DNA of 64,000 bases from sequence record OR529409.1, one strand, 5' to 3'. A program made the translations under genes and the position numbers. The notes beneath the pieces were generated by a model. The model saw nothing but the letters and a program-made list of their open reading frames with translations. It ran no database searches and was not told the origin of the DNA. Of this stretch, positions 19,618 through 43,325 are shown one piece after another; position 1 is the stretch's first letter, and each line of letters begins with the position of its first letter.

Positions 19618-20379
19618 ATGTCCGACAAAATGCCATCCGAACACTACGCGCTTAAATTCTTAGAGGGCGGTGTCCCTAAAGTTATCAATGGTAAACGCTA
19701 CCTGGAAATGAACGGCGAACTGGTGAACGTCGCTACTTCACTTTCAGAGGCGACCTTCGTCAGAGATTGGCTTCTCGGATTCTCGTTAGGTTATGTCGGC
19801 GAGAAGTCTTATTTTGATTTTGCACGGTGGATGGAAATTAGTAACGAAGGACGCTCGGCTGTTATCGTCCATGATAACGAAGACGAAAATAAACCTATCT
19901 TTGTTGTTCCTCCTCTGACCGATACGAAAATGACGGCTCAGGAAATGGAAGTTCTTCAGGTAGCCGCTGGCGTGATGAGCAATGCTTATGGCGCGCAATT
20001 CGGCGGATCGACCAGCAGAAGTACCGAAATACTTTTACAGGGCCTGTCCATTATCCAAAAGGGTCTGCAGTCTGGCGAATACACCATAACCGATCTCGTC
20101 CCACCCTTCATCTATGAAAAATACTCGATCAATCCTCGAGTATTTAAAAAGATGATGCATTGTAAAAATACCTTTGGGTTGGATACCAATGATGAGAGCT
20201 GGAAAGTATTAGAAGCTTGCTTCAGGGTCATCGACGAAGGTAAAGTGTTAAAACAACAACAGTACGACTTCTTAATGGCGATCACGCAAAATACAGCAAT
20301 CGTCCCCGATCAATGTAAACCTGACAGTAAAAATAAACAGGAAGATCAATTTACAGAGATCAACCCATTTGAGTGTTAA
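19618..20379 (+). CDS. Conserved phiKZ-like hypothetical protein
   Basis: 253-aa ORF with GAGG SD. Confidence 0.7.
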   Translation: MSDKMPSEHYALKFLEGGVPKVINGKRYLEMNGELVNVATSLSEATFVRDWLLGFSLGYVGEKSYFDFARWMEISNEGRSAVIVHDNEDENKPIFVVPPLTDTKMTAQEMEVLQVAAGVMSNAYGAQFGGSTSRSTEILLQGLSIIQKGLQSGEYTITDLVPPFIYEKYSINPRVFKKMMHCKNTFGLDTNDESWKVLEACFRVIDEGKVLKQQQYDFLMAITQNTAIVPDQCKPDSKNKQEDQFTEINPFEC

Positions 20380-21512
20380 GCATGATTAATTCCCCCAAGA
20401 AAATTAGGATGTTGTGGTCAAGTGATCATCACACACTTCATGAAGGCACCCCCACAGTTCACATCTTAAGTAACCTGGGGGAATTCTTTTATAAGTACAA
20501 CTCCCTGGCAGAAACCGACATCGTTGTTTTTGGCGGTGATTTTTTTCATAAGCTAGTCGATGCTTCTAACAGCTCGATGCGTTTATGTGAATATTGGATT
20601 AATAAATTTTTAATCCGGTGTGCTGAAAATAACGTTGTGGTGAGAGTGCTGGAAGGGACGAGTTCTCACGACTGGGAACAACCGGAAATATTCCAAATAT
20701 TGAGCCCGGATAACCTTGATTTAAAATGGGTTAAAGAGCTGAGTATTGAACGCATTGAAAAACTGGATATGACCGTGCTTTACGTTCCGGATAACATGGG
20801 GGGTAAGAAGCCCGAGGTTATTTGGGATGAGGTCATCGATCTTCTAACTAAGCATAACCTGGAGAAGGTAGATTTTATCTTTTTCCACGGATCGTTTAAA
20901 TACCAATTAGACGAACGTTTCAGTAAACACAGTCACGATGAAAAATTGTGGTCGACGATTGTTAACTATTATATCTTTGCCGGGCACATCCACAAACCTT
21001 CAGAATGTGGGCCGATTAGATGTTCGGGATCCTTCGATAGAACGGGTCATTCGGAGGAGCATCCTAAGGGCGGATATATCGTTGATTACTTCCCAGAAGA
21101 TAAGAAGTGCACCGCCACCTTTTATGAGAATAAAAAGGCGCTGCCTTATATCACCCTGAGAATTACACCGGAAACAACAACAGAAGAACTAAATGATAAG
21201 CTTGGGTTCCTAATGGATAAGCGATACCCCAAAGCCAGTCATTTTTGGATTAGAGGAGGGAATCCTCTCGTCGTTAATCCGATCATTCAGTTCTTCAAAC
21301 AACAATATCCTCAGTATGACTTTAAGAAAGAAAACGTTGTTACTCATGAAGCAGTAATTGACGATGAGCTTTATACTGAAGATCTTTATTCTGGTATAAC
21401 GTTAACGAAAGATAACATCATCCCTTCTCTAATGGGCTATTTGAATAAGAAGATTTTGTTAGTGGATGAAGAGTTAGATTCCCTAACAAAAACAATGGAG
21501 GAGTTTATCTAA
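20373..21512 (+). CDS. sbcD: SbcD/Mre11-like metallophosphoesterase nuclease (phiKZ gp65-like)
   Basis: Calcineurin-like motifs SDHH, GGDFFH, GTSSHD, FHG and AGHIH. Confidence 0.88.
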   Translation: MLSMINSPKKIRMLWSSDHHTLHEGTPTVHILSNLGEFFYKYNSLAETDIVVFGGDFFHKLVDASNSSMRLCEYWINKFLIRCAENNVVVRVLEGTSSHDWEQPEIFQILSPDNLDLKWVKELSIERIEKLDMTVLYVPDNMGGKKPEVIWDEVIDLLTKHNLEKVDFIFFHGSFKYQLDERFSKHSHDEKLWSTIVNYYIFAGHIHKPSECGPIRCSGSFDRTGHSEEHPKGGYIVDYFPEDKKCTATFYENKKALPYITLRITPETTTEELNDKLGFLMDKRYPKASHFWIRGGNPLVVNPIIQFFKQQYPQYDFKKENVVTHEAVIDDELYTEDLYSGITLTKDNIIPSLMGYLNKKILLVDEELDSLTKTMEEFI

Positions 21513-35980: not shown

Positions 35981-37273
35981 CTAGAAAAGTGAATCGTAAA
36001 GATTAAGTACAGTTGTTTCTACTTTAGAAACGTGGGCGTTTTTCATCTTAGTTAACATAAACCGAGTTGGTATGTTAACGACCTCACTACTTAAACGGTT
36101 GGCCGATTTACCCAAAGAAACCCCACAACAAACTTTGCAATGGTTATCTTCTTTTGTCTGGCACAGATAAGGAACGCGCATCTTAACCGTACTACCTATC
36201 ATTTCGGTCTCAGTGCCCTCCAGAACGGTCGGTTTCCCATTCTTAAGGTAATAACCACCCTTCCAGTTCTTGAGACTGTAAGGGTCGATATAGACGTCTT
36301 CCGTATAGGTCGTCCCACAATCATCTTCAGCCACGATAATTCGTGAGGTTAAGCGCATCAGTTCTTTAACCCCTGCACCACCTTCACCCGTTGCCTTACC
36401 ACGGTCATAGGACGCGGAAACTGCGGTATTGATGTAGTGGGTAATTTGGTCGTAATTCCAAATCTCATTAAGGGGTTGTTTTATCAGAATAAACTCACCC
36501 GTGTTAAAGTCCCTTTCCAGACCAAAGACCAGGAACATTTTCTTACGGGCGTTATCGATAAATTTCTTATCAATGAAGAAATCAGAAGAAGCGCCGTTCA
36601 ATTGCTCTTCCATGTCGAGGTCTACGATCTGTTTGATGATGTTCGCTGCGACAATGGGGTCGTTCAACTCATGGGCGTGCTCTTTAAACAATCTCTCCCT
36701 TAGTGCAATGACCGCCTTACTTACGGTAACCGCTTGAATGCTTCCGGCTTTAGTAAAGATGTCATTTAAACCCATCAGATAGTTGGCTTGTTTAGTAAGC
36801 TTAAGACACTCGGTCACGCTTGCTTTACCAGCCGGTACCTCTTCGCCTGGCTGAGGGTCGTCTACCATTAATTCGGCGATGACGTCTTCAACTAATCTGC
36901 CAGTTATGAGCTTATTGTGGTACGGAGTTCTATTTTGGAACACTTCCCAGAAAAGACATCTGTTAAGCAGTAGAATCCCCATTGTGGTGGTAATACTCCC
37001 CTCAATACTCGGGTGCCATTTATTGTCTATCACCAACTTCTCGTGTTTGTAGAATAGCGGGTAAGCGAGATCCCCTTCTATTTCTATCGTGTCCCCGTCA
37101 TCGTTATAACACCAAAATCCGTTAGGGCTGCGATGAAGGAACCAGGGAGTTTTACCTAACAGAGTCTCGTTCTTTTCATTATCAGTAAGAATGGAAAAGG
37201 TACTCAGTATCCAGAGTTTCTTTTGATACATACGTCTCTCAAAACACTGGAAGAGGTAATCGATCTTATTCAT
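35981..37273 (-). CDS. Virion RNA polymerase beta' C-terminal subunit (phiKZ gp80-like)
   Basis: RGKATGEGG bridge-helix-like segment, EDDCGT, C-x7-C-x2-CCG Zn site and MLTKMKNAH. Confidence 0.85.
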   Translation of the reverse strand: MNKIDYLFQCFERRMYQKKLWILSTFSILTDNEKNETLLGKTPWFLHRSPNGFWCYNDDGDTIEIEGDLAYPLFYKHEKLVIDNKWHPSIEGSITTTMGILLLNRCLFWEVFQNRTPYHNKLITGRLVEDVIAELMVDDPQPGEEVPAGKASVTECLKLTKQANYLMGLNDIFTKAGSIQAVTVSKAVIALRERLFKEHAHELNDPIVAANIIKQIVDLDMEEQLNGASSDFFIDKKFIDNARKKMFLVFGLERDFNTGEFILIKQPLNEIWNYDQITHYINTAVSASYDRGKATGEGGAGVKELMRLTSRIIVAEDDCGTTYTEDVYIDPYSLKNWKGGYYLKNGKPTVLEGTETEMIGSTVKMRVPYLCQTKEDNHCKVCCGVSLGKSANRLSSEVVNIPTRFMLTKMKNAHVSKVETTVLNLYDSLF

Positions 37274-38150
37274 TGGTTAACCCCAGTTTTTTCACTAATC
37301 CGTCAGCGTAGTACAGACTTTCCACATCAGAGAAATCTTCTCCTAAGCGAGCAGAGAGTTTATCGAGGAAACTCTCATTGGTAATCCCGCTGCACAGCAT
37401 CAAACAAATGATTTCTTTAATGTATTTTTTAGGTTCAGTCTCTTTCATCTCGTTGAGTCGATCAAGGTAGTACTTGTAAATAACCAACCACCCGATACCT
37501 AATTTGCCCGCGCTAACAACGTGTTCCCACGCCAACGTTCCGCGTAAGAATTCTTTATTACCCCTGACTCGGTCGCTGACGTATTGAGGGACTTCAACGT
37601 CAGCATCAGGGTTAATCAACGACGTCCTTAAAACTTCTAACAGATGTTCAGAGACGTCAGAGATAATCATTTCGTACAGGCTGGTGTCCTCCAGATCAAG
37701 GAGCTTTTCGATCACCATTATGAAACGATCTTTTGTTTCTAAGTCAGCCGCTTCCAAAATAACACTCAATGACAGAAGATCCTCGTAACCATCCAAAATA
37801 TAAGCGACGTCGATGATATTAGTGAGTAGGGGAAGATGGTCTATGGTGATCTGATCTTTATCAATCTCAATGCCAAGTTCTGTAATGATTTGAATACTAT
37901 TAGCAATGAGGATATCCCTTACTGCGTTAGTCTGTTCCGTAACCGTCATTCCTTCGTCAATGAGTATTTCCAGGATTTGGTTTTGTACGGTTGTTTCTTC
38001 CTGACTAATCGCAATTAAATTATACGCTTTATCGAATGTATTGAAATTAAATTCGGTAATGGACTTAGCAAAGGCCAACCAGGTTTCTCCTAACTCAGAT
38101 GTCAGGATGCTGGCTTCAGTGAGGTCTATTGCTCGTTTTTCAAAAATCAT
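37266..38150 (-). CDS. Conserved hypothetical protein
   Basis: 294 aa, coupled to the vRNAP gene by an 8-nt overlap. Confidence 0.7.
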   Translation of the reverse strand: MIFEKRAIDLTEASILTSELGETWLAFAKSITEFNFNTFDKAYNLIAISQEETTVQNQILEILIDEGMTVTEQTNAVRDILIANSIQIITELGIEIDKDQITIDHLPLLTNIIDVAYILDGYEDLLSLSVILEAADLETKDRFIMVIEKLLDLEDTSLYEMIISDVSEHLLEVLRTSLINPDADVEVPQYVSDRVRGNKEFLRGTLAWEHVVSAGKLGIGWLVIYKYYLDRLNEMKETEPKKYIKEIICLMLCSGITNESFLDKLSARLGEDFSDVESLYYADGLVKKLGLTNE

Positions 38151-38193
38151 GGTTTAACCCCTGCTAAAGGTCGTGGGTAATAGGAGACATAAA

Positions 38194-38901
38194 ATGCGTA
38201 GTAGCCAGCAGAAAGCCAAGGCTAGTCACAAGAAAGCGATCAAAAATACTCACCGCAAGAAAAACTGCAGCGGAAAGAAGATCGTTTTAACTAAGAAACA
38301 GAAAGAAAGAAAAATGATTGAAACGATCACCGCGATGGCGAAAGCCGGGGATGTCTCCAGCGTTCAATTACTGGCTGCCGCCAGCGCCAAAGATAAGAGC
38401 GTTAAATCGGGAGAGCTTAAGACCAAGCAGCTTATCGAGTTGGTGGATGAAAATATTCAACAACTCATTATTTCCCACGCCCTTGTGGAAGGTGTTGCTG
38501 AATGTTTACACGAAGGGCTTATCGAAGATCCTGATAACGCCATCTCTGATAAAGTCAAAGAATGCGACGAATTGACTGTGCGTTGGATGGAAGACGCTAA
38601 TGCTGTTATTGCGCTCAGCCACACCGAACTCATTCCGGAAGATTACGTCGATATGGCCATTAGCTTTATGGCCAGCACTATCGGTATCATGTCCGATAGC
38701 TACCCTCGACTCATCGAATTAACCGAAGACATGAAATCGGTCATTAATAAGAAAATGGCTGAGATCATCGATGCGGTGAAAGCTGACTATCCGGACGCTA
38801 CCGAATTCGAACAGGTCTCCAAAATTCACCAGAAGCGAATGATGGAAATCATGCCGCTTTACGGCACCCCAGCGCCTGTAGAAGAAACTGAAACCGTTTA
38901 A
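38194..38901 (+). CDS. Hypothetical protein with a Lys-rich N-terminus
   Basis: ATG 38194 with AGGAG SD. Confidence 0.7.
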   Translation: MRSSQQKAKASHKKAIKNTHRKKNCSGKKIVLTKKQKERKMIETITAMAKAGDVSSVQLLAAASAKDKSVKSGELKTKQLIELVDENIQQLIISHALVEGVAECLHEGLIEDPDNAISDKVKECDELTVRWMEDANAVIALSHTELIPEDYVDMAISFMASTIGIMSDSYPRLIELTEDMKSVINKKMAEIIDAVKADYPDATEFEQVSKIHQKRMMEIMPLYGTPAPVEETETV

Positions 38902-38918
38902 TCATAGGACCGACATTT

Positions 38919-40535
38919 ATGTCTGAAGAAAACAACATTCCGGCCCAAGGGACGGCGCACGACAAGAACAACCACACGATGAGTCAGTTCCAGGAACCCA
39001 AAGATCTCAAGTTGGGGGTGTTCGATCCAAAAGAAGATAATAATTTCATTAAGGTCTTCTTAGGTGTTGACTCAGAAGAGTACAAGAAACTCTCTGGACT
39101 TATCTCAAGATGGCTGGAGTACAACTTCGTCCTCAACGAACCCAATGCCAAACCGGCTCAGATTAACGCGGTTAAAGATAAATACTTCGGGTATCTTAAA
39201 GAACAGTACCCGAACAAAACAGAAGAAGAAGTTAACGAGCTGGCTCAGTCATACTACAGCTTCGCAACCAACTTCACTGAAAATCTGTACCGCCGGAACG
39301 AAACCGTTAATGGGGCTAAAACGACTAACGTCTCTTTAAAAGCCCAGGGTATCGTCGAGGGAGACATCGTTGGCCGCGCGCCAGGGTTGGGTAAAAAGCT
39401 CCCTATGCGCGATATGATGCGTCGCCATTTCCGTCGCACCACTAACGAAGCGGAAAACTTCGACGTTCTCCTGCGTAACTCATTTATTCAGTTACGTATT
39501 TCTCGCCCAACCATTCTGGAACTGGGGCGTCTGCTGGAAGACATTCAGCTCGAAGTGAAAAACTACGTTCGTCAGGTTAATGGTAACTCATTAACTCTCG
39601 CTCGTATTTCTATCGCTCGGGTTATTTGGAAATTCGTTTCTGATCGCATCGTATCCTGCTCCGTCAAAGATACCGACGATTATTACGATCTCGCTAACAA
39701 CATCCTTTGGAGTGACTTTGGTGCGCTTTGCATCTCGTTACTTTCCGCATCGTCGTCCAAGGGTGTGAATTTTCAACTCGAGTGTCTTGCGAACAACTGC
39801 GACTGGGAAGAGTATCAGGTTATTGATCCTTCTCTCTTGCTTCGTCCTATTCCTGAGAATCTTTCAGAAGAGCAGTCTATCGCTCTGGGTAATATCGTTA
39901 ACGGGGTTCAGCGTTATTCCCGTGAAGAGATTACTAAACTTCAGAATAAGACCAAGTACGATTTCGATACCAAATTGATGTTCGACGAAGGCCGGCAGTA
40001 TTTCGAAATCGCTCCTCCAACGCTGTCTGTTGCGTTTGAAACCTTCGACATGTTCGTCGATAAAGTCATCCCTTCGATTCAGCAATTGCGCGCTAACACC
40101 ATCAACGATCAGGAGTATGCCGTTGCTCTGGCTAACCTCATCCAGAGTATCGCCGGTAGCGAATACGCCCATTGGGTTAAATCCTACGTGATTAACCCGG
40201 AGAGCGGCACAGACGGTGCACCTACTAAGTATGATCGTTTAGGCGAAGGTGGGTCTCGTGAGTTTAATGAAGGTCTCTTCGATATCCTCGATAGCGATGT
40301 TGAACTTTCCCAAGAACTCATCAAAAAGATCAACCGTATCGGTCCATCGATGACACTCACCATCATCGGGGTGCCGAACTATCATTGCCCTCGTTGCGCG
40401 AAATCAAGTTCTGAAAGCGGCATCACTTATAAAGGCATCACCCCTATTGATCCGCTTATGGCTTTTTTTACCCTAACCCAGTTGATGTTTATGGATCGGG
40501 TGGTGAATCTAAGCGGTCTCGACGCAACCCCTTAG
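38919..40535 (+). CDS. Putative tail/baseplate-hub assembly chaperone (G-type; T4 gp26-like Cys pairs)
   Basis: 538 aa with CxxxxC and CPRC. The C-terminal ...AFF is encoded by a T TTT TTT slippery heptamer. Function is inferred. Confidence 0.55.
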   Translation: MSEENNIPAQGTAHDKNNHTMSQFQEPKDLKLGVFDPKEDNNFIKVFLGVDSEEYKKLSGLISRWLEYNFVLNEPNAKPAQINAVKDKYFGYLKEQYPNKTEEEVNELAQSYYSFATNFTENLYRRNETVNGAKTTNVSLKAQGIVEGDIVGRAPGLGKKLPMRDMMRRHFRRTTNEAENFDVLLRNSFIQLRISRPTILELGRLLEDIQLEVKNYVRQVNGNSLTLARISIARVIWKFVSDRIVSCSVKDTDDYYDLANNILWSDFGALCISLLSASSSKGVNFQLECLANNCDWEEYQVIDPSLLLRPIPENLSEEQSIALGNIVNGVQRYSREEITKLQNKTKYDFDTKLMFDEGRQYFEIAPPTLSVAFETFDMFVDKVIPSIQQLRANTINDQEYAVALANLIQSIAGSEYAHWVKSYVINPESGTDGAPTKYDRLGEGGSREFNEGLFDILDSDVELSQELIKKINRIGPSMTLTIIGVPNYHCPRCAKSSSESGITYKGITPIDPLMAFFTLTQLMFMDRVVNLSGLDATP

Positions 40536-40582
40536 AGTTAACTACCTTTACTAACTCGCCTGATTATCTGCAGGCGAGTAAA

Positions 40583-40972
40583 ATGTTCTTAGGGAAGTCC
40601 ATTAAAACGATCACCCGCACAGAACTCAACGTCATCGATAGCAAATTAAATCGTATCGGCATGGGGTATGTGGGGCTGAGTAAAATGACTCCCTTCGATC
40701 CTATCAGTTGGGTAGAGGAAGAGCATGAGTATACTCACCCGTTCAGTCTTCAACGTCGCTTTTACGACTACGGTTATTTCCGCCTAAAAGAAATCTTTAC
40801 GTTAAACGAATACTTAAACATGGAAGCTTACCTTTTGGATAAGGCGATGAAGTACATTCGTTTAGGGGCCGATTCCAGATTAAAAGATGAAATCAGGCTC
40901 AATAAAGATAAAGCTGAGCCGGAAGCCAGTGAGGTCGAAAAAGTCATGAAAAACCTATTAGGTAAAGGATAG
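40583..40972 (+). CDS. Putative tail assembly chaperone T-portion, probably also expressed as a -1 frameshift fusion
   Basis: Its frame is open from the slippery site at 40463. No clear SD, and a 9-bp hairpin lies just upstream of the ATG. Confidence 0.55.
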   Translation: MFLGKSIKTITRTELNVIDSKLNRIGMGYVGLSKMTPFDPISWVEEEHEYTHPFSLQRRFYDYGYFRLKEIFTLNEYLNMEAYLLDKAMKYIRLGADSRLKDEIRLNKDKAEPEASEVEKVMKNLLGKG

Positions 40973-40977
40973 CGATT

Positions 40978-41559
40978 ATGTCTTATTCCAAACCTTCAAG
41001 TACTTCTATCACGCCAACCAATAAGGTGATCGAAGAAACCGAAGAAGCAGTTCAGCAACAAATCACCTTAGAAAAAGAAAATGTTCCTACCGTCGTCCTT
41101 GCCAGTGAGATGGTGGGTTCTAAAAGTAACGCAGTGACTGACGTTTTCGTAGAGGCCCTGACGCGCTATAAAAACGTATTAGCCGGTAACCTTGTTCTTA
41201 ACAAATCCCAGCTCAAAGAAGAGCAGGCTGCGTTTATGAACACAGTGAGTAACACGATGAATCTTGAGTTTAAAGATTACGTGTTAACCACCGATGCGTT
41301 GGTTCTTTTAATGCGTGATAACAAAGAAGCCTTCAACGAAAAGCGTCTGTACGAACTGTTTTATTATGTTCAAGGCGACTATTCTAAGAAGGCGGCTGAA
41401 CGTTACATGCGTTACATGTCGGCTTTGTATACCCTGTCCCAAAACCTTCGTAACCGTTCTCGAATCGGTAAGATGGTGGACATTGTCAGTCTTTCCTCTG
41501 GCTATACAACTAAAGCCGCTACGAATATCCAGAATTACTTCAACCGTAATTACGGTTAA
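40978..41559 (+). CDS. Conserved hypothetical protein
   Basis: 193 aa with AAGGA SD. Confidence 0.7.
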   Translation: MSYSKPSSTSITPTNKVIEETEEAVQQQITLEKENVPTVVLASEMVGSKSNAVTDVFVEALTRYKNVLAGNLVLNKSQLKEEQAAFMNTVSNTMNLEFKDYVLTTDALVLLMRDNKEAFNEKRLYELFYYVQGDYSKKAAERYMRYMSALYTLSQNLRNRSRIGKMVDIVSLSSGYTTKAATNIQNYFNRNYG

Positions 41560-41603: not shown

Positions 41604-43325
41604 TTATGCTGCAAGTTTATTGTAAACTTTTTCGATCTCAGTAATGGTCGGGAATCTGTGAAGTGTAGTGCAGAGACTCAACGCATTTGCTTTAGGACTG
41701 CTGGCGTAGTTGACTCCGACTTCCCTGAATTGGAATCGATTCAACCCTTCAATTTTACACGCTTCCATACGTGTTGTTTTATTTGATACGTTCAGCGCCA
41801 CTGTTGCGGTTGGATAAGCACCAGTAACGTCGATATCATCAGTCAAACCACGACCACGACTTCTGATACCCGGCATGCCGATAAAGAGCGCTTTACCCAT
41901 GTCCTCATTCTTTTCAGTCTCCAACAACGCAATCCAATCTTTAAGATCTGGTTTAAGATCATCAAGCTCGTCTTTGCTTGTCGTTCCGCGAGTACCCCAA
42001 ACGTAACCGTTATCTTTAGCAACAAAAGACAGTTCATCGGAAATACATTTCGGCTGACTAGGGTAGTTAAAGAATTCAGACGATTTCAAAAGCATAGGTA
42101 ACGAGAGACTTAAGTCGTCCGTCTTTTCGTTAAGTTCTTCTATCGTGATGTTATCTTTGATGTTGTATATGCAATATTCAAAGATATGATTCTTTTGCAT
42201 GTAACGGTGCCAGTCGGGAGAACCTGCTGGTAAGTGACTACCCGATTCGGTATAGAGTTTACCTTCTATCCCATTATCTTGAGCGGTGAATTCCAATCCA
42301 TAAGAATCCTTCTTGCCCTGAGGAGCGCGTTTAATCGCATAGAAGGATGCAGCGTCCAACCATTGCCATGACGACATAGCTTGAACGGTAGGGAAACTTT
42401 CTTGCCACTCCAGAGGTTGTTTATCACCGTTCTCCTTGACCTTATGGGTTCTTCCTTTATTGAACCAATAATTCTGGAATTCTTCTGGGACATTCGGGTC
42501 GCTATAAACCGCAGCCGGATCAATGTTGTAAGCAAGTAATGCTTCCTCGTTCTTCTCCATATCGAACTTGGCGTTCCAAGATGCTATCCAATCAGGATGC
42601 CATTCATGCCAGCGCGCTACGTTACTTTCCACTACTTGAGCTTGGTTGTCGAAGAGCTCCCAAATCACAGTCGCGTTACGTCGTTTTAAAACATCCCCTA
42701 ACAGTCGTTCAGCTTCAGATTCTAAAGTCTCGATAATCTTCTTATCAGACATTCCATTAAAAATCCAACGAACTGCTGAGAAGTAAATCTTTTCTTTAAA
42801 CGTAGTCGACGCCATAATGATAGAGTCATCATTATTGTTGATCATGTTTGTTTCTACGTCATAAGCTGCCGTGGTATAAGACTCTGTCTCTTGGTATTTT
42901 GCCTGTGTCCTGAAATAGTAGTTCTTTATGAGTACCGGAGTGGTTTGCTCGCAACCGTAGACATATGGAGAGTTCTTCATAGTCAGCAGGTCGGCTTTTT
43001 TATCAGGTACCCCGTAGAGGATTCGGCTGATATTCATCGCCATACGAGCACGTGTGCTTTTAAAACTATCACATAATCGTTTGTCGATGTAGTCTTTCTT
43101 ATCTTTAAACTTACGGAATTTTTCTTTCGTGATATAAAAGTCGACAACGAGATCGGGAATACCTATCAGCGAATCAGACCGAGACCCGTCTTCATGGACA
43201 TTGGTTATTTTAACCAGGTTATAGTCTTTTAATTTGTCGTACCGTGATGTGCTGTAAGCAACTTTTTTACAAACTTTTCCAATGATAGGAGAGTCGTTTT
43301 TTTCTCCTGATCCTAGTGTAATCAT
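41604..43325 (-). CDS. Split family-B DNA polymerase, 3'-5' exonuclease + motif A subunit (phiKZ gp82-like)
   Basis: ExoI YDVET, ExoII SWNAKFD, ExoIII YCIYNIKD and polymerase motif A DIDVTGAYPT. Confidence 0.88.
   Translation of the reverse strand: MITLGSGEKNDSPIIGKVCKKVAYSTSRYDKLKDYNLVKITNVHEDGSRSDSLIGIPDLVVDFYITKEKFRKFKDKKDYIDKRLCDSFKSTRARMAMNISRILYGVPDKKADLLTMKNSPYVYGCEQTTPVLIKNYYFRTQAKYQETESYTTAAYDVETNMINNNDDSIIMASTTFKEKIYFSAVRWIFNGMSDKKIIETLESEAERLLGDVLKRRNATVIWELFDNQAQVVESNVARWHEWHPDWIASWNAKFDMEKNEEALLAYNIDPAAVYSDPNVPEEFQNYWFNKGRTHKVKENGDKQPLEWQESFPTVQAMSSWQWLDAASFYAIKRAPQGKKDSYGLEFTAQDNGIEGKLYTESGSHLPAGSPDWHRYMQKNHIFEYCIYNIKDNITIEELNEKTDDLSLSLPMLLKSSEFFNYPSQPKCISDELSFVAKDNGYVWGTRGTTSKDELDDLKPDLKDWIALLETEKNEDMGKALFIGMPGIRSRGRGLTDDIDVTGAYPTATVALNVSNKTTRMEACKIEGLNRFQFREVGVNYASSPKANALSLCTTLHRFPTITEIEKVYNKLAA

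Follow-up and report, generated by a model that had tools for sequence, protein, structure and literature searches.

Comparative evidence for a probable programmed -1 frameshift that joins two conserved genes of nucleus-forming jumbo phages

Background

Are two adjacent open reading frames (ORFs) that every database record annotates as separate hypothetical genes expressed, at least in part, as one protein? The question is raised by a stretch of 64,000 nucleotides from sequence record OR529409.1 (the window), in which ORF A (38919-40535, plus strand) is followed by ORF B (40583-40972, plus strand) in another reading frame. The pair is found in nucleus-forming jumbo phages, a group of which phiKZ, 201phi2-1, Goslar, SPN3US and RAY now rank with the most intensively studied phages.

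A first-pass annotation, made from the letters of the window alone, had proposed that a -1 programmed frameshift fuses ORF A to ORF B in a phiKZ-like jumbo phage, and had identified the pair as a tail chaperone of the lambda G/GT type. We compared the locus with its orthologues and analyzed the two proteins that it would encode. The comparison strongly supports the frameshift. The tail chaperone identity does not hold up in gene position, size, sequence or fold, and it sits uneasily with early expression.

Results

A slippery heptamer precedes an open -1 frame

ORF A encodes, as its frame-0 product, a protein of 538 residues that belongs to the family of phiKZ gp77, EL gp47 and 201phi2-1 gp136 (phrog_4585). 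Its codons 515-518 read GCT TTT TTT ACC, and the last base of Ala515 together with Phe516 and Phe517 forms the slippery heptamer T_TTT_TTT (40463-40469, plus strand), which has the X_XXY_YYZ phase relative to the A frame. ORF B, annotated as 129 residues (phrog_19747/24181), lies in the -1 frame relative to A. After a stop at 40448-40450, the -1 frame stays open for 44 codons up to the ATG at 40583, or 40 codons when counted from the heptamer. From the heptamer to 40972 it is open for 169 codons, and the part that would be read after a shift contains no in-frame ATG, GTG or TTG upstream of 40583. The ORF coordinates, codons 515-518, the phase of the heptamer and the frame relation reported by the first-pass annotation all hold on re-checking.

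A shift at the heptamer would yield a trans-frame product of 517 + 167 = 684 residues by residue count, in agreement with the size of about 684 residues proposed earlier. The predicted -1-frame part of this product (40469-40972, plus strand) has 167 codons and a stop; about 38 codons of linker come first, then the B domain. Between 40470 and 40535 (plus strand) the DNA would be dual-coding: frame 0 holds the final 21 codons of A and their stop, and frame -1 would begin the linker.

Among the 60 large ORFs of the window, which together hold 19,615 codons and 49 Phe-Phe pairs, we counted just two in-frame T_TTT_TTY heptamers. The second is a T_TTT_TTT at 20540, within an ORF at 20373-21512 (plus strand); a -1 stop follows three codons on, and a slip there would merely truncate the protein of that ORF.

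The arrangement is kept in 39 loci

We used scripts to score 39 loci drawn from GenBank records and from metagenomic contigs that carry family members, and located adjacent A and B genes by tblastn in many phiKZ-like phages. Over 38919-40972 the window aligns with the Miami group of Klebsiella jumbo phages (99.2 % for Miami itself and 94 % for Raoultella phage VB_ZK_P1). The named loci include those of EL, RisingSun, FishSpeaker, the Vibrio viruses Aphrodite and Tiduna, AH04, SXP01, pEt-SU, N1M2, Survivor, LAh10, OBP, PS2, the SPN3US-like SPFM2, RAY, KpLz-2_45, Yong XC31, 201phi2-1, the phiKZ-like Churi and RSL2. In these named lineages A is about 15-36 % identical to the A of the window, and the A proteins of the examined loci outside the Miami group are 15-70 % identical.

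All 39 loci have the downstream ORF in the -1 frame of A, and in all 39 this frame has no stop from a point shortly before the homologous Phe-Phe through the linker and past the stop of A. At the distant loci this open stretch spans 139-234 codons, compared to 5-98 codons for the +1 frame, and in one contig (L037) it reaches the contig end after 60 codons. A perfect T_TTT_TTN heptamer stands at the homologous Phe-Phe in 36 of the 39 loci, where TTN is TTT, TTC or, once, TTA. The variants with TTC (T_TTT_TTC) still fit X_XXY_YYZ, and the heptamer is not destroyed in them. Heptamer, -1 relation and open linker persist among orthologues at protein identities as low as about 15-20 %. The first-pass annotation had cautioned that an open stretch of this length may arise by chance, which is fair for one genome alone; the comparison of 39 loci rules out chance for the open -1 frame.

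The number of relatives recovered varied with the search. A search for related loci in IMG/VR using A alone found none and a word-indexed protein search found only five relatives of A, while an exhaustive profile search gave 474 family representatives. The gene pair is present in 255 phage records.

Signs of selection on the heptamer and the -1 frame

Phe is preferentially encoded by TTC in the A genes, the share of TTT being 12-63 %. Against this usage, a codon analysis of 17 loci has TTT throughout for the first Phe of the pair, and in the same analysis the codon before Phe-Phe always ends in T while encoding Ala, Ser, Asn, Gly or Thr. Among all 39 loci, the base preceding the first TTT is T in 36. 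The product of the per-locus chances of these codon choices over the 17 loci is about 1e-18, a value that treats as independent loci that are not, since they form about 11 clusters at less than 60 % identity.

Downstream of the shift, the -1 frame of 17 lineages holds an invariant F-F-x-P-x-P motif and an invariant Leu about 20 residues on. The invariant C's of the two Pro codons coincide in frame 0 with the wobble or first base of codons that specify variable amino acids, so that the invariance of these Pro codons in the -1 frame fixes wobble positions of frame 0. Linker length differs among lineages by whole codons only, and in the three closest metagenomic relatives (A 70, 50 and 45 % identical) the linker is about as conserved as B. 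On this evidence from the sequences, the -1-frame linker appears to be read as protein. The frame-0 tail beyond Phe-Phe (about 21-24 residues in most lineages) is also conserved, suggesting that the unshifted product matters too.

The same alignments indicate that B has no conserved start codon. The position of the window's ATG 40583 is occupied by Pro or Ser in the 70 % and 45 % identical relatives, and the annotated starts of B vary between ATG, GTG, TTG and even CTG and lie 8-125 nt past A. Single records illustrate the range of annotations. In KPN8 (locus L002, 10650-11054) B is given a CTG start; in RAY (locus L027, 3291-3839) the annotated start lies 136 nt within A, upstream of the slip site; and in Churi (locus L031, 4488-4625) the annotation covers only the final 45 codons of a 171-codon open -1 stretch.

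How the two products would be made

We consider it very probable, on the strength of these comparisons, that a conserved programmed -1 frameshift joins A and B across nucleus-forming jumbo phages. Ribosomes translating ORF A would arrive at T_TTT_TTT (40463-40469) with tRNA-Phe in both the P and the A site. A fraction of them would slip one base back, both tRNAs would re-pair with UUU, and reading in the -1 frame would resume at 40469. The outcome would be two proteins with the same first 517 residues, namely A (538 residues) and the 684-residue trans-frame protein. A would end in a 21-residue extension of its C-terminal helix, and in the trans-frame protein this helix end would be swapped for a Pro-rich, probably flexible linker and a helical B domain. 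B on its own would probably not be made as a rule. The signal and its family-wide conservation are seen directly in the sequences, and we infer that the slippage is ribosomal and that a set ratio of the two products is needed.

Measurements in Escherichia coli are consistent with slippage at such a site. U_UU.U_UU.Y belongs to the H_HH.U_UU.Y class, which is among the most efficient heptamers measured there, and U_UU.Y is the second-best A-site tetramer (PMC4066793). With no stimulator present, U_UU.U_UU.C and U_UU.U_UU.U still give more than 0.1 % frameshifting, and both are under-represented in the genes of E. coli (PMC4066793).

The first-pass annotation had pointed to a 9-bp hairpin in front of B and to an ATG 40583 lacking a clear Shine-Dalgarno (SD) sequence. 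Folding does predict the hairpin (40554-40579, plus strand, with arms at 40554-40562 and 40571-40579), in the Miami group only; about 85 nt separate it from the slip site upstream, and its conservation already fails in the relative with 70 % identity. We rejected it as a frameshift stimulator on the grounds that it is too distant and not conserved. The statement on the SD sequence needs qualifying: an AGG at 40572-40574, 8 nt before the ATG and marked as the ribosome-binding site of B in the Miami record, does exist, and it sits inside the 3' arm of the hairpin. If the hairpin is active at all, it would presumably lower independent initiation of B.

Protein A: a predicted zinc-binding fold

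The record of 201phi2-1 describes gp136, its A protein, as similar to phiKZ gp77 and EL gp47, and A falls into two PHROG families without function, phrog_4585 and phrog_8054. Family members have 460-660 residues, and the full-length proteins in the best 150 of the 474 representatives end 10-40 residues past Phe-Phe. We searched and folded the A and B parts separately. No named family for A was found in Pfam, NCBIfam or the PDB (with the single sequence and with a profile) or in PHROGs at lenient thresholds.

An alignment of 94 sequences shows full or nearly full invariance at Cys 289, 294, 490 and 493, at Pro509 and at Phe516-Phe517. The AlphaFold2 model of A built on this alignment is confident, with a predicted local distance difference test score (pLDDT) of 93.4 and a predicted template modelling score (pTM) of 0.92, and the modelled fold is one that is predicted to bind zinc via the four cysteines. 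The last element of the model is a helix at 512-536. It includes Phe516-Phe517, and a shift at this point would thus trade the end of the helix for the Pro-rich linker and B.

A Foldseek search of BFVD with the A model found the protein's own family, including a member named 'Baseplate protein'. It also found matches, among predicted structures only, to proteins named 'Baseplate hub assembly protein, bacteriophage T4-like' of about 260-285 residues (E 1e-3 to 2e-2, probability 0.97-1.0, target TM-score (TMt) 0.43-0.56 and query TM-score (TMq) 0.24-0.31). Matches including a Bacillus phage 'baseplate hub subunit' have probabilities of 0.82-1.0 and TMt values of 0.34-0.56. Two GenBank records and one UniProt entry label family members as baseplate or baseplate hub proteins. 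In the Churi record, a 47-residue product encoded beside the locus, gp258 (locus L031, 4676-4819), is called a 'baseplate hub protein', which looks like a spurious annotation transfer.

The comparison with T4 gp26 and gp51 that the first-pass annotation had suggested gives a divided answer: there are weak Foldseek matches to T4-like hub assembly proteins, and the match to PF12322 (T4_baseplate) is not significant. A itself has no PF12322 match in a Pfam search. An apparent bridge to PF12322 through the short member P0158 was rejected, as P0158 is a fragment of a full-length member and its relatives carry no Pfam annotation. Mapping A and B to gp44 and gp45 of SPN3US proved wrong, since the former is a subunit of a DNA polymerase and the latter a protein of the head.

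Two records bear on when and where A is found. In the record of 201phi2-1, gp136 carries no note of detection in virions by mass spectrometry, unlike its two divergent neighbours, and A is apparently a non-virion protein. Churi gp256, the homologue of phiKZ gp077 and phiPA3 gp074, appears in a table of 15 early-expressed proteins (PMC11849849).

Protein B and the surrounding genes

No named relative of B was found in Pfam, NCBIfam, the PDB or PHROGs. A fold search with the model of B and the linker returned only the protein itself and its orthologues.

The gene upstream of A (38173-38901, plus strand; 242 residues; phrog_28183) occupies the position of phiKZ gp78 and is syntenic in all relatives. 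The downstream gene (40978-41559, plus strand; 193 residues; phrog_14374) is syntenic in many relatives and is labelled 'virion structural protein' in one record (MJ359). Library searches found no named family for either of these flanking genes. The A/B pair is located between genes for a virion RNA polymerase and virion proteins and genes for a DNA polymerase or helicase.

On the minus strand at 35981-38150, the window encodes a 430-residue RNA polymerase beta/beta' fragment (phiKZ gp80-like) and a 294-residue protein (phiKZ gp79-like). The 201phi2-1 record notes detection in virions by mass spectrometry for both corresponding neighbours, one resembling phiKZ gp80 (part of the beta' subunit of the virion RNA polymerase) and one resembling gp79. 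The 35981-38150 pair and the A/B block share a short divergent intergenic region, which suggests divergent promoters at about 38150-38173. Beyond the downstream gene, a 573-residue ORF (41604-43325, minus strand) matches a PHROG 'DNA polymerase' at E = 9e-206; its annotation in Miami and KPN8 is 'ribonuclease'.

An ARAGORN scan of the window (1-64000) detected no tRNA genes. Record OR529409.1 (Stenotrophomonas phage BUCTxx100) is 100 % identical to the locus. Every other close relative (94-99 %) is a phage of Klebsiella or Raoultella, and the host label Stenotrophomonas looks odd.

Discussion

What weighs against a frameshift at this locus

A number of observations speak against a programmed frameshift between A and B, or against a high efficiency of it. 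The evidence for the trans-frame protein is, at the level of sequences, entirely comparative. Three of the 39 sites are imperfect, namely that of Noxifer (G_TTT_TTC) and those of two metagenomic loci (A_TTT_TTT and G_GTT_TTT); all three retain the U_UUY A-site tetramer and a shorter T-run. The conserved Phe-Phe is itself a feature of the protein and explains part of the T-run. No in-frame A-B fusion occurs in the best 150 of the 474 representatives.

Sites of this kind frequently, though not obligatorily, come with a stimulatory element, either a hairpin or pseudoknot 5-9 nt downstream or an SD-like element upstream. The first-pass annotation saw no obvious stimulatory structure, and our folds agree: single-sequence folding of the window leaves the first 30 nt or so downstream of the slip site unpaired, folding of 17 and of 7 aligned loci yields no consensus helix or covariation, and no SD-like element was found upstream of the slip site. 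As we find no conserved stimulator, the efficiency of the frameshift could be low.

A possible chaperone identity for the pair

Could the pair be a true lambda G/GT-type tail chaperone of the phiKZ-like phages, which binds the tape-measure protein while its extension recruits the tube protein? The logic of expression is the same as for lambda G/GT and P2 E/E+E': slippage into the -1 frame at a heptamer towards the 3' end of the upstream ORF adds a C-terminal extension to a minority of the chains, which share their N-terminal part with the short product, a whole phage group keeps this arrangement, and the downstream ORF has no start of its own. A is, moreover, apparently not in the virion. The position of the pair is different, as A and B do not lie between tube and tape-measure genes and are surrounded instead by genes for an RNA polymerase beta' fragment, a virion protein, a DNA polymerase and a helicase. 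The heptamer differs too (T_TTT_TTY), as does the upstream protein. Lambda G-type upstream proteins have about 100-150 residues, and A, with 538 residues and a predicted zinc site, is four to five times the usual size. No sequence or fold likeness to tail chaperones was found, since A matches no Pfam family, tail-chaperone families included, and Foldseek returns no PDB fold. The weak fold matches to T4-type hub assembly proteins lend this identity some credit, as the T4 hub includes the tape measure gp29 (PMC3004832), and the early expression of the Churi orthologue (PMC11849849) counts against it. On balance we regard it as unlikely.

The likeness to T4-type hub assembly proteins (PF12322) has to be weighed in its own right. 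Two T4 proteins, gp26 and gp51, are listed as chaperones of hub assembly (PMC3004832). The T4 particle lacks gp51 (PMC3004832), and A likewise appears to be a non-virion protein. The Foldseek link is weak and runs through predicted structures, and A is about twice as long. Several findings argue against a function of this kind: the best PDB fold match to the A model has an E value of 0.87, which is no match; PF12322 scores 11 bits against one family member (E = 0.33; cut-off 24.5); A/B lies outside any tail or baseplate gene cluster; the Churi orthologue of A is listed as early-expressed (PMC11849849); and the all-helical model of B and the linker is poor (pLDDT 52). We know of no frameshift in the T4 genes. 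We tentatively suggest that A is a non-virion assembly factor distantly related to the T4-type hub assembly proteins and that the B extension provides a second binding function in a minority of the copies. Such an A/B pair would possibly work like lambda G/GT without belonging to that family.

Slippage of the ribosome or of the polymerase

The same fusion would be obtained if the RNA polymerase, possibly the phage's own non-canonical enzyme, added one U to a minority of the mRNAs at the T-run. The site is a homopolymeric run of 5-7 T's, one inserted U puts B in frame, and UUUUUUU has been noted as prone to transcriptional slippage (PMC4066793). The length and the phase of the run are difficult to reconcile with this origin. 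Most lineages have only six T's and some have five. Runs at which transcriptional slippage is known in bacteria are longer, about 8-9. Transcriptional slippage would favour a longer run, and the run is never lengthened in any lineage. The T that is selected before the first TTT in 36 of the 39 loci completes, instead, the ribosomal X_XXY_YYZ pattern. We consider polymerase slippage quite improbable and a ribosomal frameshift the better explanation.

That A and B are two ordinary genes, with B initiated independently or by termination-reinitiation, a T-run that merely encodes Phe-Phe and an incidental frame relation, is very unlikely: the AGG before ATG 40583 that Miami annotates, the separate annotation of A and B in all records and the lack of a fused orthologue in the best 150 of 474 representatives would fit it, but the AGG is held in a hairpin arm, the start of B is not conserved, the linker is conserved as protein across the annotated starts, the heptamer codons oppose the genes' own usage, the -1 frame is open from the heptamer in every locus, and the -1 relation recurs in 39 of 39 loci from about two dozen lineages where one third would be expected for each.

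Other genes with -1 shifts

A programmed -1 frameshift between A and B would resemble that of E. coli dnaX (tau/gamma) in that the shift occurs at a homopolymer-type heptamer and gives products with a common N-terminal body, different C-termini and a set ratio. In dnaX the shifted product is the shorter one, whereas for A/B it would be the longer, and dnaX has strong flanking stimulators, an upstream SD-like element and a downstream hairpin, that we do not find at the A/B site. As in OrfA/OrfAB of the IS3 family of insertion sequences (IS), a fusion would be made by a -1 shift between two overlapping ORFs, and IS elements have U_UU.U_UU.C as one of their heptamers (PMC4066793). The IS3-family product is a mobile-element transposase, usually made with a downstream pseudoknot or hairpin, and has no relation in sequence or function to A/B.

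In the literature searched, with subscription papers outside the search, we found no report of a frameshift at this locus or of a function for phiKZ gp77. Matches to 'gp77' concern the Goslar capsid decorator, a PhiPA3 polymerase subunit and the PCH45 small terminase, and are irrelevant. As far as we can tell, the type of signal is classical, and this case, its breadth and the protein family are new.

Conclusions

A conserved gene pair of nucleus-forming jumbo phages has been deposited everywhere as two hypothetical genes, with arbitrary starts for B and, in Churi, with most of B unannotated. Recognition of the probable frameshift would correct the annotation of the pair in 255 phage records. 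It predicts a concrete protein of 684 residues that should be findable in existing proteomic data, and would add to the frameshifts of bacterial viruses a deeply conserved case without an evident RNA stimulator. The putative two-isoform protein, with its novel predicted fold, is a target for structural and functional work.

It is conceivable, and we put it forward with caution, that a -1 frameshift without stimulator is ancestral and near-universal in this core gene pair of nucleus-forming jumbo phages, and that the zinc-binding two-isoform protein is an enlarged relative of the T4 hub chaperones. If true, a chaperone ratio set by frameshifting would have arisen independently of lambda G/GT, and B would be mis-annotated or missing in more than 250 deposited genomes. 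The probable frameshift at A/B would also mean that a ratio of short to extended protein fixed by frameshifting is not limited to the classical tail chaperone genes.

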